DNA of 64,000 nt, taken from Convolutriloba macropyga. Lineage: Eukaryota. Shown one piece after another: positions 5,719 through 42,000 of the stretch. The stretch covers positions 7,192,001-7,256,000 of the forward strand of contig NC_134468.1 in assembly GCF_964194025.1 (NCBI RefSeq). Direction: 5' to 3'. Each line of letters begins with the position of its first letter. The stretch's first letter is position 1. The position numbers were made by a program, and so were the translations under genes. A model generated the notes under the pieces. That model was not told where the DNA came from, did not search any database, and was given only the letters and a program-made list of their open reading frames with translations.

Positions 5719-6080
5719 TTTTTAAAATGAGGGAACCGCAGCAGCTCCTCGTACAGCACAAGGTCGATTTTGTTCAAGTCACATTCTTCTAATGCAGGCA
5801 ACACTGAAAGCGGTCTTGAATCTGCTTTTCTATCAAACGGGCAGATCACGCCTCCATGTCTAAAGCGATCAAATTTAATGGAAATTTTAACTAGTTTTAC
5901 GAATTCAAATTTATCAACAACATACCTCTGAATTAAAACTTCTAAGCAATTCAAGCAGAAAAAATGACCACAATGAAGGCACAGTAAGTTATAGGAGGCA
6001 AAGCAAATAGGGCAGACCAATTCATCAACTTGGAGTCGCTGATTCTTAGCAGTTTTATCTCGACCATATCTGTTGCCCAT
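5719..6080 (-). CDS. Mirror copy of the RING exons (6080-5926, 5859-5719)
   Basis: Reverse complement of 23680-24041 with intact frame and splice sites; KADSRP here versus KAEPRP in the right copy. Confidence 0.85.
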
Positions 6081-13708: not shown

Positions 13709-13714
13709 ATCTGC

Positions 13715-14432: not shown

Positions 14433-14440
14433 GAATGGTC

Positions 14441-18100: not shown

Positions 18101-21100
18101 TGTTCAACAAACGCTCTTGACACGGTTTTTGCCTTTTGTTTGACTAATGCTACGTTTTCGTACCAGTCACTGAATTAATTAACAATAAGCAAAACGTACT
18201 TGTTTCCCTGATAATCGGGAAGTGGACCCATGATATCAAAAGATACTTGCCAAAAGGAATGACTAAGTTTTTTTTGCGAGTGAAAGCCGATGTTTCTGTT
18301 TAGTGCATTTTCTTTATAAGCACACGTCACAGCTTTCTGTCCAGTTCCTTGCGTCTCATCTCATTCACGGCCAAAAAAATCTTTCAGATGCCCTTCGGCA
18401 TGTTTTCTCAATTCCAAAGTGACCTGCGCTAGGAGAGTCATGCAACAGCTGAAGCACGTTGGACACTATTTCCCATGATACAAGCATTTGGTAAACAGTC
18501 CCAAAGTTGGGTTCTGTTTGGTGTTTACGAAACAAAATCAATTCTTTGAGACAAAGATTTGTGTACTGAACCCCGTATTTCCATAACTCCTTTGATGCTC
18601 CATTTTTCATCTGCCATGGCTCCGGTCTTTTTTGTTTAGTACCCAGGAGTATAGTTTTCAATTTTCAAATTCGACTATCATAGTCGGTTTTGTCTTGCTC
18701 TGCGTCCTTCGTAATCGGGTTAACGAAATCTGTCTGCTAATCAACTTCTGTATTTATCCGCGACAGACAGTTAGCGTGTGGGACTTTTTTGCCTGCTCTG
18801 TGCTTGATTGTTGCGTAAAGGGCCGAGTGCAAATAATTCCCTTCTTTAAATAACAAATAAAAACCTTCTTTAGCTCGGTTGCCACACTTTTGCATTCTGT
18901 GTTCCATTTAAGTTTAATTGACTCATTCAGTAACCTGTAAATAGGTCCTGCTGTTTTCCGAAACCCTGAATAATTTTTCGATATAGCCCACAAGGCCTAG
19001 AAAGGCCTTGACGTCTCTCAGTGAGGATGGTTCTTTCATTCTTTCTATCGCTCTTAAGTTCTCGGGGTCGACCTCCACTCCACTCTCGAATATAATGTGC
19101 CCAAAGAAGCTGACACGCTTTGAAAAAAATTGCATTTGGTTCCATTAATCTTTAATCCATTCAACGTTAAACGTTGGAAAACCCGTTCTAACCGTTTCAG
19201 GTGTTTGTCGAAATTTCTGGCGAAAACGATAACGTCATCTAGATACACTAGAGCATTTCGTAAGAGAGGCCAGCAAAAAGTAACTCCATTAGGTTTTAAA
19301 AAACTCCCAGTCTAGATGCCAGTCCGATAGGAAGTTTTATCCACATATACAGGCCCAGAGGCGTTTTGAAAGTTGTTAAATTCTGACTCTCTTCCTCGAG
19401 CGCCTTCTGAAAGTATCTGGACAATAGTTCAATGTTCAAGAAGTACATGTTTCTCTCCAAGGAATCAATAACCTCCTTACTTCGTGGTAAAGGCCAGAAT
19501 GTTTTCTCGATTTGTTTGTTCAGAACAAGGTAGTCTAAAACCAAGCGACAGGTTCCATTTTTTTGGTAGGTACAAGAAATAGTGACGCTGCCCAATCGGA
19601 ATGTGTTGTTTTAACTAAGTCCTCTCGTTCCAAGTCTTCAACAACTCTTTCGATGGCTTTTTTTTTCAAGACTCAAGCTGCTTTATGTACGACTGAATGG
19701 CATAGCATCCTTTTTTAGTTTTATTTTATGATAATTTAGTCGCAAAATCCCGTATCATAAGAACTTCGCCAAAATATTATTTCATAATTTGCGCAAAATG
19801 ACCTCATTTTTGACATTTCCTCAAAGACAAACTGATTGAACTTCCGTTCACATTCTTTTCAAGTTCAAATTCATCTGTATCTTTTGGATTTGGGGGGGTT
19901 TATTTTCAAGTATTCTTTAAATTTTTTCAATGTTTTCCTTACATTCGATTGTAGCATTTATCTAATTTTTTTAATATAGAGTTTGGAACACAAACCCACA
20001 CGACATCATCAATCATGTAACTTAGCAATCTCGTTATCAATATATGTGACTTGTCTTTAAACTCTTTAATTGGCTGGACTATAATTTCTATTTGTTGTAT
20101 TTTGTTACCTTCTTCATTGATGATTTTGCCTTTAATGAAACCTTTGAAGCGACGAGGTAAATCGTGATCCTCTGCAACAATTGAAAACAAATTCTTATTT
20201 TTTCGTTGTGATGGGGACAGTCGTAATCTTTTACCAATTTTCCTGCAAAGGAGTTCTTTCTTACTGTGGTTTAAGATACAATCAAAATTAAATAAGTATT
20301 CCATGCAAGATGAAGAAAGCGTTGTCTATATTTTATATTTTCTAGCTCTTTCTAGTGCCCTCCCAAAGTGTACGATAGAAATCAATAGTCAACTTTTGTG
20401 GCCTTAACGCAAAATAATCGGCCGCTCATCAATTTCACTTACTGTTTTTTTTTGCCACTTCTGAAGTTGTGACAAAAACTGAAAAAGTGCAACATAACTA
20501 TCGAAATCAATTGAACCCTTAAAAGGCTCTAGTAAAAGCGTTTTTGAAGAGTGGCGCGCCATCCGTGTTTTATGAAAAAGTTGCTGTTATTCAACATATT
20601 TCAATATATTAGTTCAAAACCCTACCTACTTTTGTTGATTCTCTAACACAGCAGCCCTTAAATCTTATTGACACTGTATTTCTTTAAAACAAAACAAAAA
20701 ACTCGAGGTTCATTGGTATATTTGTAAGTCAAATTTTGTCGAATTTAAATACGCTTGATTTTGAACCCTAGTTTATTATCGAAAAAAGATATACGACCCG
20801 ATTTCCACTACTCGAAAATTTAGGGAGTTCTCAATTGAAAGTTCCGAGATGGCAGTGTTCCCGTCGAATCCCGACACCAGTTCGAAATTCATCTTTCGGG
20901 TTGTGATGTTAAGACGGCAGACTCGTGTCAAAAGTTGGTTTTGGACGGCAAACAAAAAATAGATTTCTTTTAGAAATCTGTACGACGCTCAATATTATTG
21001 GGTGGTGGTTTCCTATTTACTTTTAACCTCTGTCGCCACTATAGTAGCTGCACGTGCGCAATACTCTATGACTTTGGCTAATTGAGCGTGGTACATGTTT

Positions 21101-21428
21101 AAAATGCAAAGTAGGAAGTTAAATTATTAAGTAGATCAATGTGAAGAAAATTTGATTTAAATAAAATATGAATTATTAGAGTGGTTAGCTCTGATAGTGG
21201 TTTTGATGTTCAATGAATGAATTTAATCCTCGCTTTAGTCGGCACCCAATATCAGTTCTATCATCGTGGTAATTTAACCATGCTTTTTCTGATCAAATGT
21301 TTATTTTCTTTTCCGACACCTATCAAATATTTGTCAGCCATCAATCAGGTAATAAATCTCGTCTTAAATTAAATCTTTAAATTTGAAACCCAAGGTTTTT
21401 AGTACATCTTTTTTATATACGCGTGACA
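15194..21428 (-). mobile_element. Mirror copy of the gypsy element; keeps about 1.1 kb more of the env-like region and lacks about 136 bp of RNase H
   Basis: Mirrored ORFs (19296-19595 RT, 19054-19248 YLDD, 18365-18661 IN); PBS at 21027-21038. Confidence 0.93.
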
Positions 21429-21899
21429 CTCAAGCTATCATATCTAAGAACAAAAATCAGCTTTGCTCTTCTGAGGAGTTCCATCCTCTGCATTCGTGGG
21501 TCAAGGACGCTTAGGCGTTGCGAAATTGTTGAAGCTTCGATGGGAGCTGTGGTTGAAGAAGGGAGGCTATTAGTTTGAAGAAGGGAGACTGTTAGTTTGT
21601 TTTCTAATGCTGTCTTTCATTTTATTTTATCAGTTGATGTTTTTAATATCACTTTATTGATAGATTTTAACAATACAAAATGCTCTATGAAAACGTAGTG
21701 CTGGGAGGGCCCCGGACCAGCCAAAAATCACCCAGTGTTTGGGAGGCGAATTTCTTAATTTACCTTTTTTTTGTCATTGTTGATCATTCTTTCTGTCTTC
21801 TAACTCGTGCATCGGAATCTTTCTGTGTTCTGCTTATGCTTCTTCCTGAGTCATATATATTTTTTATCCATAAGTCATATTTATTTCCTGAGTCATATT
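21429..21899 (+). mobile_element. Mirror copy of the CRE-like 3' end
   Basis: RTKISFALLRSSILCIRGSR at about 21447-21507; stop at 21576-21578. Confidence 0.7.
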
Positions 21900-23070
21900 T
21901 ATTTTAAAATTTGCAAACTCAATACATAACAACCTGCAATTGGTATCAAAAACCAGCTGACACTGGAAAAATACTGAATTTTCGCAGCTGTGCACCGCTT
22001 CAGCATAAGAAAAATGTGATTCAAGGGGCGGTTCACAGGGTTTTTAATGCAACCTCTAATTGGTTGGCCTTCGATCACGCTCTTGAAAAGAACAAAACTT
22101 GCTGGACCCAATATCAACATCCAGAGGAATGGTCTTCAAAAATAGTGAATCAGACTCTAGAAAAGATAATAAGTGGCGGTAAAGACCAATTAAGAACAAC
22201 GCCAAAAGAGCATCAAAAAAGAAAGACTAAACCTGTTGATAAGCCAACTATTTTTCTACAATACAGAGGCAACCTTACTCAAAACTTTGCAAGCAAACTG
22301 AAGAAACTATACGAATTGCAAGTAGTTTTTACAACGCGGAAATTAAGATCGTGCCTCCCCACCCTGAAATCATCTTTCGATAGAGACCTGAAATCCCACG
22401 TGGTATATGAGATTAAATGTAATGGATGCGGATCCATCTATGTTGGGCAACCAAGCCGGCATGTTACCACAAGGATAACAGAAAATCAAAAGAAGGATGC
22501 ACAGGTGGGTCAACATCCGGTTGAATGTCGTGGCGCTACGAATGTCATTGAAAATTCTGGATGCCTGTCGGACAGTAGAAAAACTAATGATTATCGAAGC
22601 TATATATATCAGCAAGCTGAAGCCGGCACTAAACACACGCGATGAATATAGGGGGAGGGAACTCACGCTAAAATGTTAGTTCAAATCATAATTTTGACTA
22701 AATGAGAATACATAGGGCAAAAAACATTTTGTGCATGACAAAACGAAATTTGCAAAACCTCCACAAGAGGGATACTTATGATTAGGGCAAATTCGGAATA
22801 ACCCTAAAAATACAAGAACGTGGCCAAAATCGAAAAATCCGGAATAGGAATGTTTTTAAATAAATTGATAACAGATGTAAATATGAGTTGTAAAAAGGCT
22901 AAATATTGTATATACGGAAAAATTTTCGATTGATTTTGTAGAATAGTTCCTAGAATTGTTTTAATTGTCGTCTCAGACAAATTTAAATACATATTCATTT
23001 TATCTTTTACCAATTTGTAAAACAGTTTTAACCTGACGATGAACGTAAAGTTCGAAAACGTTTGTTTTAA
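21900..23070 (+). mobile_element. Mirror copy of the Penelope-like element (lacks the 89 bp equivalent to 7822-7910)
   Basis: ORFs 21911-22645 and 22497-22679 mirror 7115-7888 and 7081-7263. Confidence 0.9.
23033..23063 (+). ncRNA. Degenerate minimal hammerhead ribozyme motif in the Penelope pseudo-LTR (mirror copy at 6697-6727, minus strand)
   Basis: CTGACGA-t-GAAC(gtaaa)GTTC-GAAA-acgtt gives the core boxes, stem II and a palindromic stem III, about 350 bp after the PLE stop codon. Stem I and the cleavage triplet are imperfect. Confidence 0.6.
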
Positions 23071-23679
23071 ATATTGGAAATAAATTTAAGTTTGACAAAT
23101 TGGTTTCCTTTACATTTTTATTTTGTTTCTGACGCTGACTACTCATTTTGTTTACTTAAACATAATAGTTGGCTTCACGTCACTGGGTTGAGGTTTTTTA
23201 ATTTAATGATCTATCTTACCCCAGCCACAAGGAGCTTCATATATCATAATCGGGTGGATATGGCTATCGGAGGGCCATATATTGTAACAGGGGTGTAAAT
23301 TTACATTTGAGATCTTAAAGCTGATGAAAAACTGTGCACATTAACGTTAACCAAGCTGTTTTCGCAGTACTTTCTGAGCCCAGTAAATGCACTGACGTTA
23401 AAAATGCAGGAATAAATACGCACTGACGTTGAACATGTCGAAAAACCTCTAAAAATTGATTAAACAATGGAGAGTGTGACCTTCTGTGGGTAAAAGTAAT
23501 ACCCAGAATTTCCGATTTTTTACTCATTTGAGCTTTTCCTTGGGGATCATGTATTTTTATTGTTTAGCTTTGATCTAGAGAATCATCCTTTCAGTGAATC
23601 ATAGATGGCTGCTCAGTTCTTCGTTCATGAAAGCAGTTTAATAACCGCATGTATAAGGTCAGCATGATAAGGCAGAAGA

Positions 23680-24041
23680 ATGGGCAACAGATATGGTCGA
23701 GATAAAACTGCTAAGAATCAGCGACTCCAAGTTGATGAATTGGTCTGCCCTATTTGCTTTGCCTCCTATAACTTACTGTGCCTTCATTGTGGTCATTTTT
23801 TCTGCTTGAATTGCTTAGAAGTTTTAATTCAGAGGTATGTTGTTGATAAATTTGAATTCGTAAAACAAGTTAAAATTTCCATTAAATTTGATTGCTTTAG
23901 ACATGGAGGCGTGATCTGCCCGTTTGATAGAAAAGCAGAACCAAGACCGCTTTCAGTGTTGCCTGCATTAGAAGAATGTGACTTGAACAAAATCGACCTT
24001 GTGCTGTACGAGGAGCTGCTGCGGTTCCCTCATTTTAAAAA
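23680..24041 (+). CDS. Exons 1-2: RING-HC zinc finger (66-bp in-frame intron at 23835-23900)
   Basis: CPIC..CGHFFCLNC..CPFD motif. The intron gtatgt...tttag removes an AT-rich stretch and restores RING spacing. Donor gttagt at 24042. Confidence 0.85.
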
Positions 24042-27000
24042 GTTAGTGGCTGCTTAATGTTTGTGGCGAGTGGTTAATTTCACTCGAATTAAGTTTAAAG
24101 AAATTATTCAATGTCTTTTGCATGTCATTGCGACATCAATTGTGGAAGTAAAAGAACTTGGTCTAAGTTTTGTAATTTTGTTCAAACCAAAAAAAAACAG
24201 TCTAATTGACTCATTAGACCCAAACAAGATTCCCCAAAGAAGATATACCAGAGTATACTATAGATATACTACATATTGTTCTGAAAATATCGCGAGGCTC
24301 TGAAAAACTCCAGACAATTTAGAAGTCGCACGTGTTACCTCCATTCACAAAATAGGGGACAGAAGCAAAGTTGAAAACTATTGCTTGTTGCATTTTTGAG
24401 CATCGACAGTAAAATTCTTAAATGTGTATATGAGGACAAAGAGTCCACAAGGATGGTCTCTAGGTCTTTTGTTGTTCTGCATCTCAATGCGTGACCTTCC
24501 AAATGCTCTCTGATTTTCTCTAATCCATTCAATTTTTAGGATGAACTCAAAATCTTAGAGGTAGTGAAAAGTGTTTCTAGTTCAAGACGATCTTAATGCA
24601 CCTAAACATTGCGTAGCGATGAACAAAATGCCATTGACGAAAAGCGCATCACCAAATTTTGAGGACACAATCTCAATTTTTATGTAATGGGGCAGTATCT
24701 ATGACGTACAGTTGTCAAGGATCTGTGAATGCAAGTCGAGGATGACCTATCATCGAGTTTTCATGTTGAGGAGGGAATGAAAAAGCAAACAAATTTCTTT
24801 GTTTGAATTTTGTTTCGCACTAAGTGAAGACTGATCCAATTGGTGACTATATTAGTCGTTGATATTGTGCTTTTGTGTTGTAGGTACTGCTAAGGACAGA
24901 GCTGCAAATTAATTTTTGTTTAAAACTTGTCGAATCGTGAACCGTCTGAAAAAACTTAAATCAGAATCAGTTGTATTGAAAAATGGTATTTTTAATATAA
25001 TGTGGAGTTATTTTCGATCGAGAAGTTTTCGGTCGAAACATCTCTACGTTGCAGTTATTCTCCCGTTGCTATAATTGTAGAAATAAGTGAAGATTAACGA
25101 CTGGGACTAAAGAAAAATCTTCAGCCTAGTCACCCATCAACAACAACGCCTACGACAAGTCAAACCAACAATGAACCGAAACTGGTAGCAAGTTACTGAT
25201 AGTGTTTAGAAGCTTGCCTCCAACCACAAACAATGCGTCAAATTTGGGATCAGTGAATCAGAAGCGAACCAAGTAACAAGCTTTGTCCTGCTGGGGTTAG
25301 TCTTGGGCGCCCTGATGTTGATATTATTTAAATGATCGATCTTCTTTCCAAAGCTTCAAACTGACATCCATTCGACTAAGCGGATGGCTTCAACGTGCTC
25401 GCCAACATAACGAAGGGAACACGCTCTCTCCCTGAAGATCCAGACGTGGAGCTGCAAAATTTTGGAATTGAACCAAAATTCCAGAGTAAAGTGACATTTG
25501 AACAAGAGACAATTAGATGACTGGGCGAATGATCTTGGAGTTATCAAGTCAAAAATTTCATGTTGACTAGAAATGTCAAACAAAAAAATTGAGTTTAAAA
25601 CAAAAAAGCGTTTCCACGATCAGAAGAGGAAGAATGCCGACCTGAAAAAGCGCTGAGCTAATTAAAGGCTTATGTAGATAGGGACTTAACATGCATCAGA
25701 TGTGTGGTTTGCATCATAAACGGATCTTTCGTGTTGCTATATGTACTGAAGTACACGGTGCCTGTTTCTGATGACAGTGGAAAGTAAAACAACACTATCA
25801 ATATGCTAGATCATGCAACAACAGTATGAACTCGATGTCACCAAAGTAAGACTCTGGAAATTTCGATTCGGTCATCAAAAACTCTTGAACAACGTCAATA
25901 GTTTCTTCCGCACGACATCAAGCCAACGAAGACAATAGTGTAGGAGCTACAACTAAGCTGACCTGAAGTGTCCTCAGCATTATTAAAGCAGATTGCTCTG
26001 AATGGTATCCTGATGATTTTTGTCGTCCTCTATGAAAGTTCAGAAAAGATCAAAATTTTCACATGAAATGTTAAGAAATTTTTTACTATGTGGACATTTT
26101 CGAAACTCAAGTTCGCTCTGCTGATTAAATTTTTCGAAGGGTTTGCTCGTTTGACAGTTTGTTCAAATCCGTGATCACTGGAAGTTCTCTTAGGTTTCCT
26201 GCAGATGGCATTTTTAAATGTCATTTTGAAATGACATCGGACATTTTTAAGGACATTACTATATGAAAACATAAACTGTCTCTACCAGGCTCTACAAGCA
26301 CAGAAAGAGAAGACTACATGATTTTTTTAATTTTTTTACCTGGCCTTATTGTTCGAGAACATTCTTACGATTTCATTTCATAGGAAATTTTTCGTGCTGA
26401 ACTTCTTGATTTTTGAGTGATTTAAATTGATTTTATTTTAAAAAAACAAGAGATTAGAAAGCATGCACAAGGCAGTGACAGGCGATTTGTAATGCTTCAT
26501 TGTATTACGATGGAGGACGAGTGTGCGAACCTCTCCTTGAGCGTTTTTTTTTCACCCATAAAAAATTATCTGGGCTACAGCCACCTCTAAATTAAATGGC
26601 CCCGCGATTTAGAGAGCAAGTTCGAGAGCAATGTCGTTCGAGAGCAAATTGTCCGACGTTAGTCAGTTTTATGTTGGAAATATCGATTTCAAAAACTCGA
26701 CCCAGACTGCAAAATTTCCTCTTATGAATATGATCTCAATTGCTTCTCCAGCTCTGTAATTGATTGTAAGGTCCCTACGATTCATTATACAAAGTTTTGT
26801 ATTTGATGCTTTTCTGAACGTTTGTTTTTTGCGCCCGTTCTCAAACGCATGTTTCCAGAGTTTTGTTCAACTCGGTTTCGCTCGTCTCAACTCCGCTCTG
26901 ATCAGTAATTAATTTGTGCTGGTGGAATAACTTTTCCATCTATTGCATCATAGCTCTTCCTTGAAACATGCAGCGCTTAGAAAAGGACACAGTTGCAAGT

Positions 27001-30000
27001 TGAAAAATGGGAAAAACAGGGAAAAATTGTTTCTGAAAGCTTCCCTCAATTGATTTTGATTTAATATGTATTCGCCGCAGTTAAGTTAAACGCCTCAGTT
27101 AAAACAGACGAAAATTATTTTCAAAATCATGGGTGGCCAAAAACTGTTGGCGTGCTGAATTGGCTATGTTTTCAATCAAAGCTACAGACTTAAAGAACAT
27201 TGCGTTGAGACCTTAAAGTTAATCAGAAGCAAATCGGAAAAGAAATAGGACAAAAACAGAACTTAGGACAAAAACAGGAGACAATAAATGCTGCACTCAA
27301 TAAATCTGTTGCAAAATTGAATCAAGTTAGTGGTGTATAAGTATCTCTCCCACACACACGACCAAGCACCTACCCTTGCACACATGCACAAACACTCTCA
27401 ATTGTGTTCTCACACACGCGTGCAGAGAGACATACATGCGTTCACATGCAAACGTGCCCACGTAAACACTCATAAATTAATAATTTGCTGTGAAATAAAA
27501 AATCAGTTTTTATGGGCTTTTCAATTCTTTACGCAAAAGATAAAAATTAGCCTTATACTATAGGTTGTACAAAAAAATTCGCCTAGCATAAATTTCCTAC
27601 CCCAAAATTCGAATTGGAACAATTATGACTTAATAACTTGGAATTCAAATGTTGCGACTTGAAGTTTTGAACAAAATGAGAGGAGTGGAGCAGAATGAGT
27701 GATTCATGATTATGCTTTCCGGAGAGCGGGAATTTAATGAGTGAAAAAAAATTACGCGAAGGCATTTTCTTGTACATGCGGCTTTTTTTGTTCACTATTT
27801 TTCTTGATTAAAGGTTTGAATATGCTATGTTAATGATTTAAAAGGTTGTTTTGATAGTGTATTAATGTTTTTTTTTAGTTATTAGTCTAAGTTTTTACTT
27901 TTTTTGGTTTAATGATAATTTAGTGGTTTCTTAGGCGACTTCAGCATTTTTTTGCTACTGTTTTGTTTCACTGCATTCATTGCGGATTGAATAGACGCCT
28001 AATGCTCAAAAGAATTTTTAGGTGTCAATTTATTTCAATTTCAATGTTGTAAAACTTTCTTTTGGCTGAGAAATTAAAAAAAAACAGAAATGGAATTTTA
28101 AAATTTAGATTATGTATTTGAGCGTATGACTTTCCTATTGCTATGTGAGCATTTTTTGTGATCTTCACGTGTTTAACGAAAGATTTTCGTTTTATGTGCA
28201 CTTATATTTTACGAGGAATTAATTGAGTTTTTTTTAGTTTTGTTGGTTTTTTAGGCTACATAGTTTTAATTGCTCTTGGACGAATTTTGAAACAATTATT
28301 GTGAAAGTGTTGGTCTTTTTAATGTAAGACTTTTGCTTGAGGGATTTGACTTTACGAGTGACCTTTGCGCCCATGACTTTCGTTTTGCGTGATCTAAGTT
28401 TTTCTTCACAAATTTAAGGAGCTGATATCAAGGGGCGGCAGTTCACTACTAAAAGTGAAGGTCGATTTACAAGTGCGCCAAAATTGGTTTCAGTTTTTTC
28501 CTTAAATTTTTATGGGGGGTTAAATTGGTATATTATATATTAAACTCTAATGACGTCATTTGAAGCTCACTTTGTGATTGTTGTTACCCCCCCCCCCTGA
28601 CTGAAGGAGACTGCAATAGGTTAGAGCTCCCACCAGTAGTCCGAGAGCAATTCTCCCGACGTTAGTCGTTTGTTATTTATTGACTTTACTTTTTTTAAAA
28701 ATTTTTCTTGAGTGGTTTTAGTATGTAGTGGTTTTATCACAGGCTTGTTTTTTGGCAAAGCCGATTCTTCGGGACGTTTCTGATTTTTTTTTCTTGATTT
28801 TTCGATCGCGCTCGCTATCAGCCATATATCATACAGAGAAAAAAAACATTTAGCACGTCGTCTACGGATAAAATATTTTTCAGAAATCGGGGAAACTTCA
28901 AAACGAATCTTTCTTGTTCATTGGAATGTCGTTGGACCACGATCAGAATATTGAGAGACATTGCAACTCTGGTGGATAGTGTTGAACTCAAGGGTTCAAA
29001 GGTTCAAGTGGGAAGTTTGTCAGCATGTGTGATTGGGGGAGTGGCTGTTACTTTGGGCTTAGGAGCTACTATTACCGGGTTTGGAGCTAGTTTGGGTGTT
29101 CCTCTTATAGTGTCTGGAACAGCTGTGGGGGGAACCGGTGCTGTTGGTATGTACTGGGTTGAAATTATAGAGAAGCTTTAACTGTCAAATTTGTGATTCG
29201 AATTTCTTGTCAAAAGTTTTCGTCTGTATCCACATTTTAATGGGTTTACATACAAAGCAACCCCAAGCACAACTGCCTTGTTAACACAATGTTTTACTTT
29301 TATCGTGTAATGCCGCGTTTTATATAACGGGGGGGGGGGGGGCTTTAACTGATGTTATTGTACTGCGTCACATTATGACCAATTTTTGCTAATTGTTTTT
29401 GTGATTTTACGAAGCAAGTCACTGATATGTGAATTATCTGCAAAAGAGGCATTTATGATCTTCCGGAATGGAAATTTGTTCAGTTTTCCAATGTGAGAAC
29501 AGTTTTCTAGGTTTTCTTCTGTATGAACTCCTTTATCGCGACATTAAGTTGATTTTTGATGGGTTTGAATAGTTTTATTCATGGTTGTAGGTTCCCTTGC
29601 TACGAATATCGTCGAATACATATCACGAAAGCGAAATTTGAAACGCGTCAACATGCGTCTTCAGCTAGACAATTTTTTGTCTGAGCAGTTACTTACAATG
29701 ATGAATAGAGCGAAAACAGATCACACAATTGCGGCTATTTGGGATCTCAGTTTCCTCAACGCAATTGGCTTCGCCTGTGCAGTGCCAAATGTTGCCAAAA
29801 TTGGGGTGACCTCGTTAGCGGGTGCCAGAACAATGGCGGTTGTTGGTTCAGGTGTGGCGCGTGCATCAATCGCCGGCGTGGGAATTGTGTTTGCGGCTGC
29901 TATGATTCCGATTGACGTTGTCCAGTTGGTGCATAACACTCTAAAAGTACATTCCCAGACTCCGTCTAAGTTGGTAAAGGAGATCAGGTGCGAACAAATG

Positions 30001-33000
30001 AGCAATCTAATAAAATGGGCTAAAAAATGAAAGTTTGGTTGGATTTTCACAACGAATCCTTCGATAAAACATGCTTGTGCCATTTAAGCACTTTGAAAGC
30101 ATTGCTTAAGTCTTTAAAAAGCCTGAAATTTATTAGTGGAATCAGCATTGATTCTAAAAAAACATTTGCATTAAAAGATAGTTGCGCTAAAACATTACTG
30201 GCGGTCAGTCTGGTGAGACATCTGCCGGCTTTTGATTTTCACTTATCAAGCGAAATAGTCGATTTATCTTATAAGCCTTGAGCAAGATGAGATGAATCAG
30301 CATCATGCGAAATAACAAAAGTAGCGGCTTTACTGATTTTGATATTGTGACTTGCAAAATTTTTGCATATAAGAGGCAGTAGTATCGGACTAGTACCTCG
30401 CAAATACAGTTTCTAAGACCTAATCTCAGTAAACTTAAATTCTTTTTATTTGTTCTCGAAATAGAAGCAATTTTTGTAAAAGTGTGTGTCTTTTTATGCT
30501 GATTCGCTTGACCGTTTTTGCGCTTTTCCTCTAGAATATTTGATTTTTTGAGTGATTTTTTCACGCACTTCTTGATTTTGAGTGATTTCAATTGCTCTCA
30601 CTCCGAAATAAAGTCTGTTGTTCAAACAAAACCGATTTTTAATAAGTCGATGACAAGGCCTTGATAGCCGAGTGGTTAAGGCCTCTGGTCTACCAGGTCA
30701 AAGAGAATAAAAGTTTTCCTGATTGCCTACGCGTTTAATCTTTTTTCTTGCGCCCGTTTGATCACACTTGAAATCTCAAAACAACCATTCTATTCAGCTA
30801 TCTTGCACACTTCTTATTGTAATTTTTTGGGTCATTGTTGTGAAAAGAATATTGATCACAAATGACTTACCTCACTGAAGAATGAATTCGGAAATTTAAG
30901 TTTAGGAATCAAACTCTAATCAAAGATCAGCTCAGTGCTCCTTAATCGGCGCTCTTTGTAGTTTTGGGAAAAAATAGTTTTGGAAAAAGCAGGCTCTTGT
31001 TTTTCTTTCTTTGTTGTTAATAGCCGCCTCAGCTTCTCAGCCGGCTATTATAGCGCTCCTAATTTTTTTAACAATTCAAAGAATATTTGAATTGTATTGG
31101 ATCGCTGTCTTTTATGATCTGGACTATGAGTGAATTGGGAAAGCCATTTCTAAAAAAAAAATCAGATAAAAAAATTTAAAAAAATCAATGTCAAAATGAC
31201 GCATGTGAACAAAAAACCACTAGCGAAAAATCGAAATTTGGTTCAAACAAAAAACTAGGCCCAGACTGAACTATGAATGGATAGGGAAAATCTTTTAGAA
31301 AAAATTCCGATCTAAAAAATCGATAAAACAGAAAATCAAAGTGAAATTGTCGCATGTGAACAAAAAACCACTAACCATAAAGCGAGTTTTTGTTCAAACA
31401 CCGTTTTCTCACTCTACTGTAAAATTAGAGTGAAAATTTCACGCCAAAAGTACTCGCTTCTTCGAGTCTCAGCGGTGTCTTTGAGGACTCAATTAATTGA
31501 TGTAGTTGTATTCTTCAGTTGCTGTTGCGTTCTGTGACTTTTATACTATGTTTTTTAAAAGTTGCAGCGAGTTTTGCGATTTTTGGTTAATTTTTTCTGA
31601 TTATTTAATGTTATTAGTGAGAGGACGTTTAATAACAGGTTGCTAATGAGAAGTAGAGGAATATAGTTGACAGTTTGAGTTCATAGCAGTTGTTTTTTGA
31701 TGTTGATACTCTTTTTAAAAAATAAAGGTTGAATTTTTAATCTTGCTTGTTTTTGTTGTGCTGGTGTTATTTTTAGTCTCATTACTAACAGCTCTCATTT
31801 GCCTTTTAAAGCGGAAGTAATGATGGTCAGGTCGTAAATTAATACGATTCTTTGAATTGTATTTCAGGACTTGTCCTGTCCTGCCTTGTTTTTTCTTTCG
31901 TCGAATAAAGAAAAAATGAGAAAACGTTTTTTAAAAATGAGAAAACGTTTTTGAAAAAGAGATTTAATGCACCGCATTATGTCCAAAAGAAAAGAAGTAG
32001 TTAGCAAATTGACTAGCTGAATTAAATTTGTCACTGAATCAATTTTGGTGTATGAAGTGATTTTATTTCGTTTGGTTAGATGCGGTTGGCGGAATATCGA
32101 AACCTGAATGTTTTTGAGTAGATAATTGATCTCTTTTGTGCGCTATTGATCGTAGACTTTTTAAAACAAAATATCTGCCGCAAGCAGAGAGACCTGTTGC
32201 ATGCGAAGGTCGATGATAGACGTGTTTAATTTAAACGGCAATCTCTTATGCATTTTACAAGCTTCTTATGCGTACCCGGTAACTGATGCGTTGGAATTTA
32301 TATCTGGGACAATTTTATATTTGGAAATTTACATCGGATTTGCTCTGCTGCTTTAGCACTACACCCGCTTGTTATCTTGTTTGTCCGCAGTCTTTCGAAA
32401 GAACTGAATATCATGCTTAAGGCGCATAGTTCAGGTCTAAGCTCCTGTGAGGACTTTCATTTCAGATAGAAAATGTTGAAGCGTCCGAAGCCAGGCGAAG
32501 ATGAAGACGAACTTCTTGCCTTCCAGGAGAAGTTTCTTGCTGAGTCTAAGTCTAATCCATCTGCTACATTGGTTAAGATGGACCGACCTACATCTAAAGG
32601 GAAGTCACGTCCAGGGAAGGAGCTAAATTCCGCTGAAGCAAAGCGTCCAATCATTGTTTCTAACTTTACGATTGGAGAAGTTATTGAGCGTCAGTCTGAA
32701 ATTAGTGCAATTGTAGATGTTCAGGACACTCAGTGTGAAATGGGGTTCCCGGTTGTAGAGAAATTGACTAATTATAACAAGTCATGTGATAATGAGGTAC
32801 CTCAAAACGTCAAGAAAAAGAAGAAAGGAACAAGTATTTTCGCCCAAAAAATGGCTGCTGATAGAATGAAAACTGACAAAAGTGCTAACAATGTACCTAC
32901 ACAACAGCCGATTTGTACAAATTTAACGGGATTCGAAGGTCACTCGACGCAAACCGGGCCAGTAATGATTGAGAGACATTTTCAAAGTAATGCGGAAGAG

Positions 33001-36000
33001 AATGTGGTAGATTTCAAATCAATTCATGAAGAAAATATGACAAAATTGAAGTCTATGAGCGACGAAGAAATCTTAGCCGAGCAACGTCAACTGATTTCTC
33101 GATTGGACCCGTCGACTATTGGATTTCTGAAGAATCGATCGAAAGTTAAGCAACCTGTTATTACTAACGAAAACAGTCATAAAGTAAGCAGTTCTACTAA
33201 ACTCGCAGAAACCTCAGGACCTTTCGGGAATCCGAATGACAAGTCATTGAGCAGTGAGGGTCAACATATTTGGGACTCGGATCTTCCAGAACCAGATCCG
33301 TCGAAGACTTATTCGATTAGATTTGATTTCCAGGGTCTAATTGTAACTAACAACAATTTACCAGTGCATCTAGGGTTACATCATCATGGCGAAGAACAAG
33401 AAGTACCTGGTTATACAGTCGATGAATTATTCATGCTCAGTAAAAGCTCGAACGCTCAACAAAAGCTGATGGCTGTGAAAACTCTGGCTTTGATATGCAA
33501 AAATGCAAAGCTGGGATGTTTTGTGGGTTTAGAAATTAATGTATTCCAGCATTTAATTGAAAAGGGCCTGCCGATTTTGTTTCGACTAGTTTTAGACGAA
33601 CAGAATATAGCTTCAATCTGTGTTGCTGTTCAGGCTTTTAGTTTGATGTTACATAGTTCTCATACTGAAAATGTTCTCGAAGTTTCAACATTGTGTTCGA
33701 CAACCCGCCTTTGTTTTGTGTCAATGAAGCCTTTCAGTGTGAAGAAAATTGATAGTAAGAAACCAGAAGATGTGATGAAAATTGACCTATTGAAAGGTCT
33801 AAACCAGACTAACATTATGATTCGGTTGCGCTACATAATCGAAGTTATTAAACCGCCGCCAGAAGTTTGTTCAGACATTTTAAAAATTCTGCAATCGTTC
33901 TCCCGACATTCTATGTCGCTAGCGTATGACGTTTTCAAATGTCCTCGTCTGTTGGACTTGATTGTTAACAATTATTTGGACCTTCAAAACCCGTTTTCAG
34001 AACTAACTATTAATTGCATGAAGTTGTTATTGGTCATTATATCGAACGGTGTTAATATGGCGAAGACCATTGTCTTGTTTCCCAATTTTGAGAAGTTTGT
34101 TCTTTTCGGTTTAACTGAAGATTTAGCAGTGTCGGAGAGTAATGAAACATTGAATTATAAGTTAATTGTTATCTCTTTGGTTTATTACTTAGTTGAAGAA
34201 TTACTTCAATGTCAATTGTTCACTGACCAATTAATTTCTGTTTTGCATTCTGTTATGATGCGAACAGTGAAACTTCAAACAGTTGAAATCGAAAAATGCT
34301 CGAGTAATGAACTCAAATTTTTAGTCGCTCATTTCAGCTTTTGTGCAACTATATACGAAAAGCTGTCAAGTCTAGCCGATAACACAGTGTTGCATGTATT
34401 CTTACATGATTGTCGTGAGATGACTTTGGTCCTTAGTCTGAAGTGGTTGAATACGATTGTAGTTTCGGAACCACATTTGATAAATGGGGTACGCAGTTCT
34501 GTATTTGCAGTCATGCTGAAAATCTTGAATGCAGGTCCAAGAAATCAAATATCTAAAGACTTGAATGAAAATTTTGAACAGCTTTTTCAAATGGTTGTCA
34601 GGTATTTGAAGAGTGGAGAAATAAGCAAGTTATTTTCGCGTTTAATTGTGGAATTCCCTTACAAGTTCGTAATTTCAAACTGTTTGCTGGAATGTTATTA
34701 CGACCTTGACATCACAACAACGTCGTTTTACACTTTCGAGTGCATTTCGTCCGTTTTTCAACTTGCGTCCAAGTTTCAAGATCCTAATCAGAACCATAAA
34801 GAAGAACTTGTTAGACTTGCGGATAATTTTCTAAAATATTTTACAAAATTCGAACCTCCGTTAGTGATAGAAAAAGATTTGAGCGACAGCTTTGGTTACT
34901 CAAATTTCATAGTTGCTGTAAAATCGGTTTTCGATGTTCTGATTTATCTCAAAAACCTTATCAATCAAGGCTTGTTATCATCTAAAACATCCCAAAGTTT
35001 AACACTTGTTTGCCTGAAATTAATATCAGAATGTCCCTCCGGGTATCCAGATTTACTTCGAAGAATGTTTAGAGAGCTATTATTTGATCAATCATTTCAT
35101 AACTACGTAACCCTAACTGAAAAGTTATCAGAATTGAATATCGATAGTTCAGTTCCTGAGAGCGAAAATCGTGAAGCTGATGTCATCAATGAAGTTTTCG
35201 TATGCTTTGAATCGTCGTTCCCGGCTATTTTGAAAAAACAGAAAACTGTCAATTTTGCTGAGATTGAAAGCTTGCTAGTTGAACCTTCAAGTAATGGCCT
35301 AGAGTTACCAAAAGATTGGTTGTTTTATCCGATTTTGAGCTTAATTGATCAAACCAAGCACAAAAACGGTGATGTTGATATTGAGTACGCTAATGTGAAA
35401 ACAGTCCGAGTATGTTTGAAGTTTCTGTGTACTCTAAGCTTTGAGCATTTATCAACATTTTTGACGCCTAATCTCATATTCGACCGCTTGATGTGCGTGT
35501 TCATGTTGACAAGTGCAATTTTCATGGACAACGATATCAAGACTTCTATTCGAAAACTTTTACTGAGTCTAATTGAGTGTACTAAGTTAACTTTGAAACA
35601 CGATTCTACGACAGACGGAGCTTTCTACGAGCATTACGTGTCTCTGCTGGAACATTTTGAGGCTGAATCGTTTGGAGACCAACTTTTTGCGAATTTTGTG
35701 CTGTTGCCTATGTGTACCCGATTTGACCCGAAGTTGCGAAGAGCAGTTTGGACAGAATTCAGCAATGTTCTCAAGGTTCATATGTTCTGAATTTTGGAAT
35801 TGTGTTTTTTTTCCCGTACGTAGCTACATAATATACGAAAGGTTTTTTTTATCGATGTAACTTTTTGAAGTTCTCATTTGGATATGTGATCCTCCCTGGA
35901 TCGAATGATCATTGATACTTTTTCTTTGAGGCAGGTTGGTGCTGAAATTAGCAGTTTTGAAATTTTAGTGGTCCTCGTGGTCTTTTGGAGCTGTTTAGTG

Positions 36001-39000
36001 GTGGATTTTACTTTTTCGAATAAATTTTTTTTCAAATTTATTTATTAATTGCTATTGCTCTCGAACGGAGTTTGAAGCAGTTATTGTAAACGTGTGTGTA
36101 TTTTTTATGCGAAGTTTTTACTTGACTGTTTTGTTCTAGAACATTTTTTTTTGTCTCCAGTGACACTTTTTAACACTTGACTTTTTGATTTTTGCGTGAT
36201 CGGAGTTGCTCTCATTCCAAAATTAAGTCTGTTGCTATTATAAAGGCGATAGAAAAGCCGGGAGCATAACATCTGGCAGGTTGGTGGTTTCGAACCCCTA
36301 CCGTGTCTTTTTTCTGCACTCATTAAGTTATCTAGGGTTCACATCCCTGAAAATCTTCGAGTTGTAATTTAAGTAACTCTTTCTTTAATAGCAAGCATTT
36401 GGTTAATAGAAACAAATAAAAATTTAAATTTATTTAACCAAATTTTAGCAACGTAATAAAAAACAACGTAATTTGAATTCACATCTTTCTCTTTTTGTTC
36501 TGACCCCACTTGTGGGGGAAGGAACTATATACTCAACTGGGTTTTTTTTGTTCAGTCAATTTTGGTCGATTGATATATTCATCGTAGAGAAATGTGAGTG
36601 GTATCATTAAAAAGCTCGTCCAGCGTAAAATTTGACATTAAAACGATTTTTCTGAATTTCGTATTTTTCGAGTGGGCAAGGATTGAAGTTTTTGTGTGAA
36701 CAAGTGATATTTGGTATGATTTCGTTCACTTTTAGAGTAATTTTTCTTCAAATTATGATCTTTTCTTGAAAATTTTTCATTCAAAATTACATTTCACGCC
36801 ACAAAGGGAATCAATTTCGTATTCCTAATACACGAAAGGTGATAAAAGATTAGTTCTGATCTCCTAGGGAAGTTTACTATAAAAAAATTCGAATTTTATT
36901 TGAGAGCTGTTTTTTTTAGAAAACTTCATATTTTTCAGGTCTCCTAGAGACTGGTCACTTTTCATATCGATGTTTGGTTATTGATAAACTTGATTTAGAG
37001 TAAAATTACGCCTAATGAACAAAAAAACGTTTTCAAGGAATCGCACATGTTCTTCATGGCTTCGACTCTGAGCTTTTGTAATTTTTAATGAAATTTTGAT
37101 TTTCTTTGAGGCTTTACTGAATTTTTGCAGCTCTTTGGCATAAAATTGTTGACAAGAATTGCATTGGATTTCGTAATGGGCATTAGTGAAGCTATTCAGT
37201 GCTCTGATTGGACAGCTAATGGCTTACAACTTATTTTTGTAAACGAAGGCAGCCGCAGCACTGACAGGATCCCCTTCTTTTCTACTGCAACCAAATCTAA
37301 TGTTTAGCGTTTTTATCTTCTAACTATTGACTTTATGAATTCGATGCTACAAGATTTCAAAAACAATTTTAAAAATTTTAATATTTTCGTATTTTTGAAT
37401 CCTTTTGAAATTTCATCACATTATCCTAATTTGGATAGCTTCCGTTGGTTTAGGGAAGACGTTCAATGGATCATAGATAAAGTTTTCACAGAAAAGCTTG
37501 TAGTTTAAATGGCTTCGACACTTTCTTCTCGCACTTTTTTTTACTGATTTTTTGTCTTTTGCCTGTATTTGTTGTTGTTTTCATAGTCATAAGACTTATT
37601 GTGATATCTTATTGATTACTCATGCATGACAAACATCTTTTTCCTTTTATCGAGTCATGACTGAGCGTGTCTATTGACTTCTGTTGAAAGCTATTGAACT
37701 TATTGTCTGTTCAGACTTTAAATATAATTTCTCAAAAATTTTTTTGAACATTAACCAATTTTAAACTTATTTTCATGATTTGTGAGAATTTCTCAGTAAT
37801 GACCAGAACCCCTTCAATTCTTCCTACAGCAATCTAATTTATTTTGGTTGAAGTTTTTTTCTAACTCCTGGTTTTATGGCTTCTATGCCACAAGATTTCA
37901 AAAAAAATTTAAAATTTTGGATTTTTTGTATATTTGGTTCCTGTTGAAATCTTATCACATTATCCTAATATTGATAGCTCCCATTGGTTTTGAGAAGACG
38001 TTCAATGGAGTATAGAGAAAATTTTCAGATAAAAGGATATGGTTTAAATGGCTGCGACACTTTCTTCTCGCACTTTTCTGGTGAATTATTGGTTTCTGTA
38101 TTTGTTTTGCAGTCATAAGACTTATTGTGATATCTTATTGATTACCCATGCATGGCAAACATCTTTGTCATTCTACTTAGTCATGATTTAGCGTAATTGT
38201 TGACTTCTGTTGAGAGCTATTGAAATTAATGGCTGTTAAGACTTCGTAAACTTATCTTCGTGAACTGTACGAACGTCTAAGTAATTACCGGAACTCCTTC
38301 TTTCCTAATCTAACAAAAATAATCTTATTGGCGACTTTATCTTCTAACTATTGGTTTGACAAAATCGATGCGCTAGTTTCCATAAATTTTTTGGACATTT
38401 GGAAAATTATCGGATTTGTTTTTGGTTCATCCCATTATTGGATTTGAAATCTTATCACATTATCATATTAGTGTTAATTCCAATTGGCCTAAAAAGGAGG
38501 TCAATGGATCATAGATAAAGTTTTCAAAGGAAAGCTTATGGTTTAAATGGCGTCGACACTTTCTTCTTGCACTTTTCTACCGAAATTTTGGTTTTTGCCT
38601 GTATTTTTTGTTGTCTCCTTAGTCAATGACTTATTGTAATCTCTTAGCGTATCGATGACTTGTCTATGACAAAAATCCTTGTCGTCCCGTCGAAGTATAA
38701 CTCTTATACTCCTATCGAGCGCTTTTATTGCCTTTCGCTGAAAGCAATTGAGTTTAATGGCGTTGATACTACCGATTTTCTCAGAATTTTCGTGGTTTTA
38801 ATGTATTTGTTCATATTTATTGATTTTTTGAAGTTATATTGAAAAAAGAATCTCATGCTGTTAAAAAGTTAATGGATGATGGAAAAGTCATTACCGAAAA
38901 GTTATATTTTAATGGCTTCGACACTTTTCTCGCGCAATTTTTTTTTTTTAATTATTGGTTTTTGCCTTTTTTTATCTTTAGGTAGGCGCAAAATGCTGAC

Positions 39001-42000
39001 CGGTCTCAAAAACTTCTAATTGAGTATTCAAGGATTGATTTTACCCAAAGCAGTCATTTTTTAGCGAATAGTCTCAAAGTTTATGATATAATACTTTTTC
39101 AATGATTTAAACTTTTCTGTTTGTTTTTTTTTCGTCAACTTGTAGCTTATTCTCATCATTGTGAGGTCTCATTCAATTTCTTGCATTCGAAAAATTTAAA
39201 TGTCCAGTGATATCATGTCGTAACTGATGTTTTGTTTGTGGACCATTTGCGTTTAAATAAGTTTTAGTGGTGTACTTGTGTTTCTTTTTCTCTTCTTTTA
39301 GCACATTCGCGTATTAACAGATCCCAATGATTTTCGAATGTGGCTTAAATGCACTTATTTAATCTTTCAGTATAATTTTAGCTGCATTAGTATGAATGAA
39401 AATGGAAGGAAGAATTCATAGTATTCAGATAATAGCTAATGATTTTAATGGCCTCATTAATTTGTGTTTTCGAAAATTGTTAATTTTGTTGAGTTTTTCT
39501 GCGTCTGTAGTGCCCTTGTTTTCTAGTTTTCTGCGTTCCTATGGCCTAATCTAACCAACGACAGGTCCTATTGGTTTCATAATGAGTGTTTAGTAGATTT
39601 CTTAAGAATTATTTCGTTAAAAGCTAATGATTTTTATGACTTTAGAAATTATTTCGTTTAAAAAATGTTGATTGATTTTTCAATTTCGGCTATTATTTGC
39701 TTTTGTCAACAATGATACCTAGTCTCATTAAGGAAAATTGCCATCTGCTGCATAGTATGAACAAAGTAAATTTGTGCAGCTAAGGTTTTATACGATTGCT
39801 TTTTGGCGTTGTTACTAGGTGCATTCAAATTTAGATATTTAGTTTTTGCCGTGAAATTTTTGCTTTTGCTTCTTTTGTTGTTTGTTTGTTTTTCTCGTAG
39901 TTTTTTCATTGAAAGATCTTGTCAGCGCTGTAATGAGGTATGGCATTATGTAGTTCAATAAGTAGTTAGGTTTTTCAACGGTTTTTTAAACTAAAATATC
40001 TATTTTTATTATCTCTTCATTTGGTTGACAATTAAGTCAAAAGTGTTGATGAGCTCGGGTCGGAACATCATGTGCGAACGCTCATTAACGAGCATCCTTG
40101 CTGGATTCTCTTGGACTCGCAGTCTGCGAAAATGATGTTTTCTGCTGCTCTATAAATTGGAAAAGAAAAGCTTCCTCCATTCCATCTTTATGTCTCTGGA
40201 TTTCAAATTTAACCTTAAATTTATTTTCATCGAATATAATTGCATTATGAATTGTCGCAATATCGTGGCATATGGTGTTATTGAAAAAAAAACATAACCC
40301 ACGAACGTGGGGCTATGCTACGGTAGTAGCTAGCTTTGTAACGCTAGCTTCAGCTCAAGCGGGTGAAGTGTATAACACGGGATGTTTTTTGGGGGCTGTT
40401 TTGCGGTGTAGGGGCTAATACGTGTACTGAATTCGTTAAACGTTTCGAGACATCTCAGCAATTGATGCAAGATTTTTTGTTTCTTTAGTTTTATGCCTAT
40501 TTTTTTTCCATTAGTTGGCATAGTTTTTAATCAAAATTTTGATACTTTATCTACAAAGCTATTGCAACTATATTTCTAGCAATTATTGTTTAAGTGGAAA
40601 TAAGTTATAAAAATAACATGAAAGATATTTCCTTGGCGTGGTTATAATTTCTTTTTAAAGCTGTCAACCATTTTCACACTAGTTCTCTTGCAGAACGCAA
40701 AAATAAATTTCCTCCGCAAAAATAATTAATTAGAAGTGGTTTTGTATCACGAATTTGAGAAACGTATATACGTTCAATATGCGCTTTTGAAAAATGTTTA
40801 CTGACCTATATTTTTTGCTGAACAGGTTCTGAGGATGGATGTTGATCAACTACTATTCCCCTTCGATTGGCTGGTCTCTCCCCTCGAGACTGAAGGTGAA
40901 ATTCTCCGAAAACAAAACAGCTGTCTTCAAGGCGATATTTTGTCCAAATGTCCCATTCTTCAAGCGGTTGCTCTGCGTAATGTTACCCAACGTCATGAAT
41001 TTGTCTCAGAAGATACTGTTGAATAAATTGCTTATGTTATGGTTTCTAATCTTCATTTTGCATTTTAAAATAAAAAGTTAAATCCTTGGATTTGGTCTTT
41101 CAAACGCTGTTGTGGATAGTTCCAGTGTATTAGAAGTTGTAGAAAATGGTCTAAAGGGCGGTAGAGCTCATCGTGTTTGGAATTGTTGGTATTTTCTCGA
41201 ACAATAAGAAAAAGGAAAAGAGTCTGGGAAGTATGGCCCCTCTTGATCTGCCTCCTGCCTACCAGTGCAGTGTTCTCTCCCCTCCCCTGACGAAGTGATC
41301 TTAATCGCCTTAACTTAAGCTATCTACTACAAAAGCCAAAGCCCTCTTCCTCCCCAGTCGCTTGAAAGCAATTCTTCCGACGTTAGTTGGGTGTTCTAAA
41401 TTGCTCTCATTCAGAATTTTAAAGCAGCTAAACTCTAAGTGGCGGCAGTTTACTACCAAAATTCAAATGAAAATCCCTAAAAATGTTTTATTTTTTAAAC
41501 CTGAAATCTTACGAGTTATATAGAACGAAATTGTTTGAGAAGGCTTATATTTGCCGCTTATCTGCAAGCGAGTAACCCTCTGTTTTTTGAGCTGTTAATT
41601 TAAAAATAAAAATAGATTGCTCATTTGAACAATGTTTACTACAGAAACCTTGCAGAATCATTGGAGGTACAACTGAAGCTATTTTATATGCAACTGGGTC
41701 TATTTCACAGAATTCATTGCTACACAAAATCGTCCTTGCCTTCACTCGAACAAGACTCACTTTTCTTAAATTCCGAACATGAAAGATCATCGGAGCTGGA
41801 GCGTCAAGACAGCATGGAAAGAGATCACCTGTTAATTGGGAAAGAGTTTGATGCGGCTTCATTGCAAACACCTGCTAATCAAAACGAAAATAGTAAAGTT
41901 AATGTTGAAAATGAATCAGAACAGAGCAGTTCAGAGGTTGTCAACTCGGATGACACGTTTGTGTTTGTCCAGGGCGAGGACGTTGCCGAGTACGAATCGA

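Follow-up and report, generated by a model that had tools for sequence, protein, structure and literature searches.

How can a gene make a full-length messenger RNA (mRNA) when its last intron contains a second, complete gene on the same strand? The question is raised by a stretch of 64,000 nucleotides (nt) of chromosome 1 of the acoel Convolutriloba macropyga (positions 7,192,001-7,256,000; hereafter the window, numbered from its first base). The assembly comprises 1,175,981,408 bases in 4,694 scaffolds, in line with the published genome of 1,175.98 Mb and 4,694 scaffolds, for which a heterozygosity of 3.65% was given (PMC13650328). The nested gene is RPAP1, and the host encodes a membrane segment, labelled here ApoL-like, which is followed by a C-terminal domain. 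In the explanation that we favor, with a probability of roughly 0.7, RPAP1 is a true same-strand nested gene in an acoel-specific host, the full-length host product arises by splicing 29987 to 41645, and a duplex between complementary boxes at the two ends of the intron would aid that splice.

Anatomy of the nest

The elements that define the nest are as follows.

29591..29987, plus strand: host ApoL-like exon 2; acceptor tgtag to 29590; ends ...LVKEI plus AG, phase 2
29988..41644, plus strand: last intron of the host, GT..AG, 11,657 nt, holding the entire RPAP1 gene
32473..35775, plus strand: RPAP1 coding exon 1, 1101 codons (RPAP1_N 2.8e-17, RPAP1_C 1.3e-22, TPR_RPAP1 6.6e-32)
35776..40825, plus strand: RPAP1 intron, 5,050 nt, GT..AG, phase 0, with tandem repeats at 37361-38576
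40826..41026, plus strand: RPAP1 coding exon 2, 66 codons and TAA, 62% identical to the exon of species B (see below)
41022-41027 (overlapping the stop) and 41069-41074, plus strand: RPAP1 poly(A) signals AATAAA
41645..42359, plus strand: host terminal (distal) exon, 237 codons preceded by the third base of a split Arg codon, starting NLAESLEVQL; stop TAA at 42357-42359

RPAP1 thus lies, from 32473 to 41026, wholly inside a single host intron and on the same plus strand, and its stop codon is separated from the distal acceptor by 618 nt. An earlier, sequence-only reading of the window had proposed this arrangement, and its coordinates for the donor at 29988 (phase 2), the AATAAA signals at 41022 and 41069 and the distal exon were all correct.

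The RPAP1 assignment is given by three Pfam domains, RPAP1_N, RPAP1_C and TPR_RPAP1, with 62.7, 80.0 and 111.2 bits versus cutoffs of 25.3, 27 and 27, respectively. Exon 1 covers positions 2-154 of the TPR_RPAP1 profile, which exon 2 continues at 156-211. The nearest named relatives are annelid and vertebrate RPAP1, at ∼30% identity. Apart from the window copy, the primary assembly has no intact RPAP1, the second copy being a broken mirror copy (described below). The idea that the nested gene is a retrogene of a multi-exon RPAP1 parent was rejected, since the genome has only these two copies.

The spacer at 30348-32030, between the host donor and RPAP1, consists mostly of high-copy repeats, with a word depth of thousands to a million in the DNA sequencing runs, and unique sequence directly before the RPAP1 ATG is limited to ∼440 nt. 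An alternative terminal exon of the host at 30-32 kb, which would have contradicted the nested model, was considered and rejected, this stretch being mostly repetitive and not conserved with species B.

The distal exon as the continuation of the host

Relatives of the locus were located by a HMMER search with the distal exon against 1.8 billion proteins, in which a handful of unannotated open reading frames (ORFs) were the sole matches, followed by analysis of the contigs that carry the matching ORFs. We refer to C. macropyga as species A, within which three versions of the locus are distinguished: R (the window copy), L (its left-arm mirror copy) and A2 (a third version, L034, 95% similar to R). 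The relatives are species B (assemblies L027 and L035), species C (L025/L026), species D (L028) and species E (L040), the last being a 2-kb environmental metagenome contig.

Host exon 2 ends with AAG GAG ATC AG|GT, the donor lying at 29987/29988, and the distal acceptor reads ...ctacag|A at 41644/41645, followed by the codon AAC that opens NLAESLEVQL. In both arms and A2 of C. macropyga, as in species B, C and D, the donor and the acceptor interrupt the coding sequence at the same codons. The split codon encodes Arg throughout, as AG|A in species A and B and as CG|G in species C and D. Conservation of the exon 2 protein ends exactly at EIR in five lineages, and that of the distal-exon protein starts at its first residue in all lineages with this exon.

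The distal exon has no start of its own. In every species that carries it, the reading frame upstream of the acceptor is closed by a stop within 10-21 codons and contains no ATG, and an early ATG inside the exon is absent in species B, C and D. The exon must therefore join a coding donor in phase 2, and the host donor is the only conserved one. RPAP1 exon 1 was considered as the source and rejected, because its donor is in phase 0 and the join to an exon that requires phase 2 would cause a frameshift.

The distal exon is under purifying selection. Versions R and A2 differ in it by 9 synonymous and 3 non-synonymous changes, giving a ratio of non-synonymous to synonymous rates (dN/dS) of 0.08 (Fisher p = 7e-5). 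The corresponding values are 0-0.10 for the ApoL-like exons and 0.30 for RPAP1. Between species A and B the exon has remained open over ∼240 codons, while RPAP1 is merely 49% identical. A protein spanning the junction of host exon 2 and the distal exon was not found in the protein collections searched.

Nested and un-nested relatives

In species C and D, which are more distant relatives, the corresponding host exons are separated by just 1157 and 939 nt, respectively, without RPAP1. In species B the orthologous intron contains RPAP1 and measures 16,054 nt (L027) or 17,277 nt (L035). Both assemblies of species B present the ApoL-like exon, RPAP1, the distal exon and a sugar-transporter gene in the order seen in the window. 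A sugar-transporter gene follows the host in species A, B and C, which identifies these regions as the same locus. In species E, the RPAP1 ATG lies 157 nt past the host donor (L040:1744-1902), in agreement with the nested arrangement as far as this partial contig extends.

The synteny proposed as a check on the nest is observed in species B and consistent with species E, species C and D being un-nested, and the order of the segments is the same in independent assemblies. Comparative genomics likewise bears out both the same-strand nest of RPAP1 in the last host intron and the assignment of the NLAESLEVQL exon to the host, the latter through its conserved boundaries and Arg codon, the lack of a start, purifying selection and the joins of about 1 kb in the un-nested species. 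On this comparative gene model, the host can yield a full-length mRNA only if splicing skips both RPAP1 exons and transcription continues past the RPAP1 poly(A) sites, as had been anticipated. Judged from the assembled genomes, the locus is a nest with a same-strand, intron-bearing gene that has been kept in at least two species.

No long-ORF RPAP1 was found from species C or D, and none is present in their host loci; the direction of the change (insertion versus loss) is therefore not polarised. Two further rearrangements were observed in these species. The whole ApoL-like and C-terminal unit is tandemly duplicated in species C, with a period of 4963 nt (L025:7142-15614), and species D carries four extra tandem copies of a fragment of the C-terminal exon (L028:4981-15232).

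Complementary boxes at the ends of the intron

The two ends of the host intron carry complementary sequences.

29995..30009, plus strand: 5' box CAAATGAGCAATCTA, +8..+22 from the donor; perfect reverse complement of 41613-41627
41613..41627, plus strand: 3' box TAGATTGCTCATTTG, -32..-18 from the distal acceptor

The boxes can form 15 perfect Watson-Crick base pairs, with a free energy (dG) of -22.2 kcal/mol. The statistic used to evaluate them was the longest contiguous helix between the intron ends. When both 70-nt intron ends were shuffled, none of 2000 trials reached 15 bp (the largest helix was 12 bp). When real 70-nt windows from a repeat-rich pool of this genome were paired at random, 15 bp was reached in 5 of 20,000 pairs. 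No further copy of the box with up to 2 mismatches exists elsewhere in the window, and an exact 18-mer of the 5' box occurs in the whole genome (1.18 Gb) at the two arm copies only. Duplex energies computed over entire 70-nt windows were also tried, and were uninformative (z -2.7 to -3.5).

The pairing has been maintained through sequence change. Species B likewise has 15 Watson-Crick pairs, and three double changes between species A and B keep the pairing (C-G to U-A, A-U to C-G and C-G to U-A). Species B and E retain the core ATGAGCAA at +10/+11 from the donor, its place in species B being the same +11. The letters just past the donor are alike in species A, B and E, the introns being otherwise unalignable. 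Between RPAP1 and the distal exon, no block other than the acceptor and the box is conserved. In the degenerate mirror copy, one box pair is altered to G-U. The short introns of species C and D, which lack RPAP1, yield helices of only 5-6 bp, no better than shuffles.

Reading through the donor without splicing adds 14 codons, the first of which is the split Arg codon, before a TGA at 30028-30030. The possibility that this tail is a conserved peptide was rejected, since there is no protein conservation in this region and the conserved letters are those of the 5' box. In species E the read-through frame stops after three further codons (RLNG*), in a different register.

We infer that the boxes constitute an RNA bridge between the intron ends, by which RPAP1 is looped out. 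In the proposed mechanism, the box 8-22 nt past the donor would pair with the box 18-32 nt before the distal acceptor, forming the 15-bp duplex in the pre-mRNA and bringing the host splice sites to within ∼40 nt of each other. The splice from 29987 to 41645 would then rebuild the Arg codon (AG + A) and yield the full-length host protein, with the ApoL-like membrane segment followed by the C-terminal domain without a matched fold. The pyrimidine tract of the distal acceptor, gtttactacag, is poorer than that of ctttcatttcag, the acceptor-like site before RPAP1, and the looping might help this weak distal acceptor to compete with the RPAP1 acceptors and poly(A) sites. Host and RPAP1 may in this way share, or compete for, a common precursor. 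If the bridge is real, the 3' box of species E would contain GTTGCTCAT directly upstream of its distal acceptor.

Several points weigh against this explanation. The four sequencing runs that cover the locus are DNA, with flat depth across exons, introns and the spacer (27900-32470, in which the repeats reach thousands-fold depth) and without splice joints, so that the case for the gene model rests on comparative genomics. The covariation of the boxes comes from two lineages, A and B. The 3' box of species B comes to within 9 nt of the acceptor and may cover the branch point, so that the duplex could hold back or gate splicing instead of favoring it. The duplex would form only after RNA polymerase II (Pol II) has passed the RPAP1 acceptors and poly(A) sites, and it therefore cannot alone prevent an earlier commitment to them. 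The host donors are weak, reading GTGCGA in species A and GTCAAA in species B, and the principal product might be a short isoform that reads through the donor and ends near 30030.

The boxes could also go back to the terminal inverted repeats of a segment that was inserted here, and in the extreme case the 15-mers would be relics of the mobile segment that brought RPAP1, with no role in RNA. Their inverted orientation on either side of the inserted material is what such relics would show, and a genomic family resembling long terminal repeats (LTRs) has a 17/18 match to the 5' box. We nevertheless consider this origin without function quite unlikely. The orthologous locus was fixed before the split of species A, B and E, and the pairing survives three double substitutions where the rest of the intron is unalignable. 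The presence of the exact 18-mer at the arm copies alone also speaks against it, and sites 7 nt from a donor and 8-17 nt from an acceptor would be an unlikely pair of insertion points. The LTR-like family is dispersed (e.g., C1:37859166 and C1:37868873), often as same-strand pairs 9-10 kb apart, and carries AGAAATGAGCAATCTAAT, whose resemblance to the 5' box we take to be a chance match amplified by copy number.

Spliced leader and the start of RPAP1

A candidate acceptor stands just before the RPAP1 start.

32455..32465, plus strand: acceptor-like ctttcatttcag, 7 nt before the RPAP1 ATG; candidate spliced-leader (SL) trans-splice site or acceptor of a 5' untranslated region

Acoels employ trans-splicing of a leader, which in Symsagittifera roscoffensis affects 30% of genes (PMC9911081). 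The 32-nt leader of that species was found in 2612 copies in the C. macropyga genome (up to 3 mismatches, many exact), as against none for the reversed control. At the four leader loci examined (L036-L039), three share one following sequence and the fourth has a different one, and in none is the leader followed by the GT expected of an SL RNA gene. This pattern suggests that the copies are retroposed junctions of leader and mRNA. RPAP1 resembles the trans-spliced genes of S. roscoffensis (PMC9911081) in that the same leader is present in the genome and an acceptor stands a few bases before its ATG, both features expected of a trans-spliced gene. The motif tttcag precedes the ATG by 7, 11 and 14 nt in species A, B and E, respectively, the remaining upstream sequence being unalignable.

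These features raise the possibility of a shared transcription unit, in which a promoterless RPAP1 depends on the host pre-mRNA for its maturation. It would be released by SL trans-splicing at the tttcag acceptor, or be joined to the host donor in cis to give a bicistronic ApoL-short/RPAP1 message. In species E the tttcag acceptor-like site lies 143 nt past the host donor, which leaves little room for a promoter, and the conserved acceptor and the leader copies point the same way. Were the host donor spliced to the RPAP1 acceptor, translation of the host frame would moreover end 1-4 nt ahead of the RPAP1 ATG in each of the three species (R*, RFE* and RVA*, in species A, B and E; window 32466-32472, L027:9990-10000 and L040:1888-1901). 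These stops could be a sign of bicistronic use, or they could reflect chance in AT-rich sequence. On the other side, the donor-to-RPAP1 spacing of 2.5 kb in species A and 7.5 kb in species B, mostly repeats, could accommodate a separate promoter, and the 143-nt spacer of species E has no canonical poly(A) signal. We regard the shared unit as possible and somewhat doubtful. It extends rather than excludes the nested gene with bridge-aided splicing, and the bridge would then pick between RPAP1 output and the full-length host. The stronger form, in which the unit has two mutually exclusive outputs, namely the bridge-aided host splice, in which RPAP1 is lost with the intron, and RPAP1 processing, with the 15-bp duplex as the switch, is put forward just as tentatively.

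The availability of trans-splicing in the lineage also bears on whether the host is a single gene. The relevant signals lie just past the host donor.

30009..30030, plus strand: possible end of a short isoform, AATAAA at 30009-30014 and read-through stop TGA at 30028-30030

After the arrival of RPAP1, the upstream part might have come to end at 30030 or at a nearby poly(A) site, with 41645-42359 belonging to a separate transcript that has its own promoter or receives a leader. Together with these signals, the weakness of the host donors in species A and B would fit such a split. We consider it very unlikely, given that the distal exon is startless in species B, C and D and its protein is conserved from the first residue, while the published leader has no ATG (PMC9911081). 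In addition, the phase and the Arg codon have been preserved, conservation between RPAP1 and the distal exon is confined to the acceptor and the box, and the complementarity of the boxes ties the distal acceptor to the host donor. The nested gene with a continuous host accordingly remains our preferred reading.

Upstream exons and domains of the host

Further upstream lie a candidate exon and one additional exon of the host.

23680..24057, plus strand: RING-finger ORF (Pfam zf-RING_UBOX, 26.6 bits versus a cutoff of 25.2); candidate upstream exon of the host
28884..29146, plus strand: host ApoL-like exon 1, Gly/Ala-rich membrane segment; acceptor tttttcag to 28883, donor G|GTATGT from 29147

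ApoL-like exon 1 is conserved in species B, C, D and E, and in species B a RING-like piece lies 0.8 kb upstream of it.

The sequence-only reading had named the host a RING-ApoL gene, and the ApoL identity was not confirmed. The ApoL profile (Pfam PF05461) scored exon 1 at E = 1.8, with 8.4 bits versus a cutoff of 25.9, and exon 2 from four species, with exons scanned one at a time, gave no ApoL match in Pfam. A lead to ApoL comes from a language model. In the ESM Atlas the clusters nearest to exon 2 are ApoL (score 0.92, 197/256 features), with low recognition (1577). A profile search with the segment returned acoel proteins only. The name is therefore used as an unconfirmed label, resting solely on that neighbor search, and the picture of the host as an immune effector with its output coupled to RPAP1 RNA processing is speculation.

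The product of the distal exon (alignment A1, 41646-42356) comprises a conserved N-terminal helix, a long acidic and Ser-rich disordered linker and an alpha/beta domain of ∼75 residues. AlphaFold predicts a confident small alpha/beta domain at residues 137-214 only. The domain has no match in Pfam or the Atlas, and its fold matched nothing in Foldseek against the PDB (best E = 0.49) or in VIA-align (best Z = 3.0). The domain seems to be confined to acoels. The motifs DDTFVFV in the linker and NEWYAL in the domain, acidic and aromatic in character, presumably resemble LC3-interaction motifs.

The surrounding inverted duplication

The host and RPAP1 are situated in the right arm of a large palindrome.

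1..29902: inner part of a large inverted duplication, with its centre near 14420; leftward, the second arm extends beyond the window

Each arm is ∼42 kb long, and the duplication covers window positions 1-56331 together with C1:7166956-7192000 (L021-L023). The arms are 96-100% alike out to ∼30,100; beyond this point, the matching blocks (RPAP1, the distal exon and the sugar transporter) are ∼91-93% alike. The left arm is broken, with a TAA at codon 258 of RPAP1 and, in the distal exon, a TGA at codon 59 and a 4-nt insertion; its sugar-transporter ORF is intact.

In the ENA assembly ERZ25071359 both arms are found on one 166-kb contig (58x) with the same 36.6-kb spacing, and the assembly has a contig 100% identical to the left arm. 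Version A2 occupies a separate contig of that assembly, ctg31672_64x (64x), with all ORFs intact. Its identity to the window is 94.6% over RPAP1 and 97.7% over the distal-exon block, and ∼3.6 kb of the RPAP1 intron is missing from it. In the DNA runs, letters specific to one arm occur at half the depth of the shared inner part. The possibility that the arms are mis-joined haplotypes was rejected, since R, L and A2 all occur in one assembly, R and L on a single contig; with three versions in one assembly, at least one duplication must be real. Probably, one haplotype carries the inverted duplication, with R intact and L broken, and A2 represents the other haplotype rather than another species.

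Inside the inner palindrome, two mirrored ORFs, at 7115-7888 on the minus strand and 21911-22645 on the plus strand, contain a GIY-YIG-like motif, VVYEIKCNGCGSIYVGQ. We take them, as a guess, to be a Penelope-like retroelement.

Comparison with known systems

As in host/nested pairs described in Drosophila (PMC3814207) and in mammals (PMC3192792, PMC11694760), one gene here lies wholly inside the intron of another. The recognised risks of such pairs are mis-splicing and premature polyadenylation (PMC3814207, PMC3192792, PMC11694760). In Drosophila, 71% of nested genes are antisense to their hosts and 73% of those on the same strand are intronless (Lee & Chang 2013, PMC3814207), a pattern interpreted as selection against mis-splicing. 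Unlike most of these nests, RPAP1 belongs to the disfavoured class, being both same-strand and intron-bearing, and the assembled haplotype has no second intact copy of it.

Long-range RNA structure at intron ends has precedents as well. Conserved intronic boxes in Drosophila pair distant splice sites, or loop out an internal terminal exon and its poly(A) site, and such structures show an enrichment in introns that are long, have weak acceptors and contain poly(A) sites (PMC2724269). For intron 4 of Nmnat, experiments that disrupted the structure and restored it by compensatory changes showed that it acts (Raker et al. 2009, PMC2724269). By analogy with this enrichment, the weak distal acceptor of C. 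macropyga would place the locus in the same situation. Like those of Nmnat and the conserved complementary regions of human genes (PMC2724269, PMC8052449), the boxes described here are short, lie near a donor and a distal acceptor and show compensatory changes. They differ from structures of the Nmnat type in that the looped part, in an intron of 11-17 kb, is not an alternative exon of the host but a complete, independent and essential gene, in that they occur only in the nested species, and in being known from sequence alone.

In long introns of yeast, zipper stems at the intron ends pair a segment past the 5' splice site with one before the branch point or 3' splice site. The pairing of the C. 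macropyga boxes would similarly shorten the effective distance between splice sites; unlike the yeast stems, which span a few hundred nucleotides and enclose no gene, the box pair spans RPAP1. Nematode operons are linear units, and the 143-nt gap of species E is similar to the spacers of operons. The locus departs from an operon in that the upstream host "cistron" resumes beyond the downstream gene, forming a nest rather than a linear array. No description of operons in acoels was found in the literature.

Nesting and long-range RNA structure are thus each of known kinds. What is new is to find them together, the boxes being confined to the species with the nest.

Same-strand, intron-bearing nests are thought to be counter-selected, inasmuch as the inner gene, through its own splice and poly(A) signals, can capture the transcript of the host. 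The locus offers a natural comparison in this respect, since nested and un-nested relatives share the host exons and only the nested ones have the box pair. With SL trans-splicing in the lineage, this one locus also opens to study the boundary between a nested gene, an operon and an alternative 3' end. If host and RPAP1 are indeed mutually exclusive outputs of one unit, how much is made of a factor essential for Pol II assembly would be tied directly to the way in which a lineage-specific gene is spliced.

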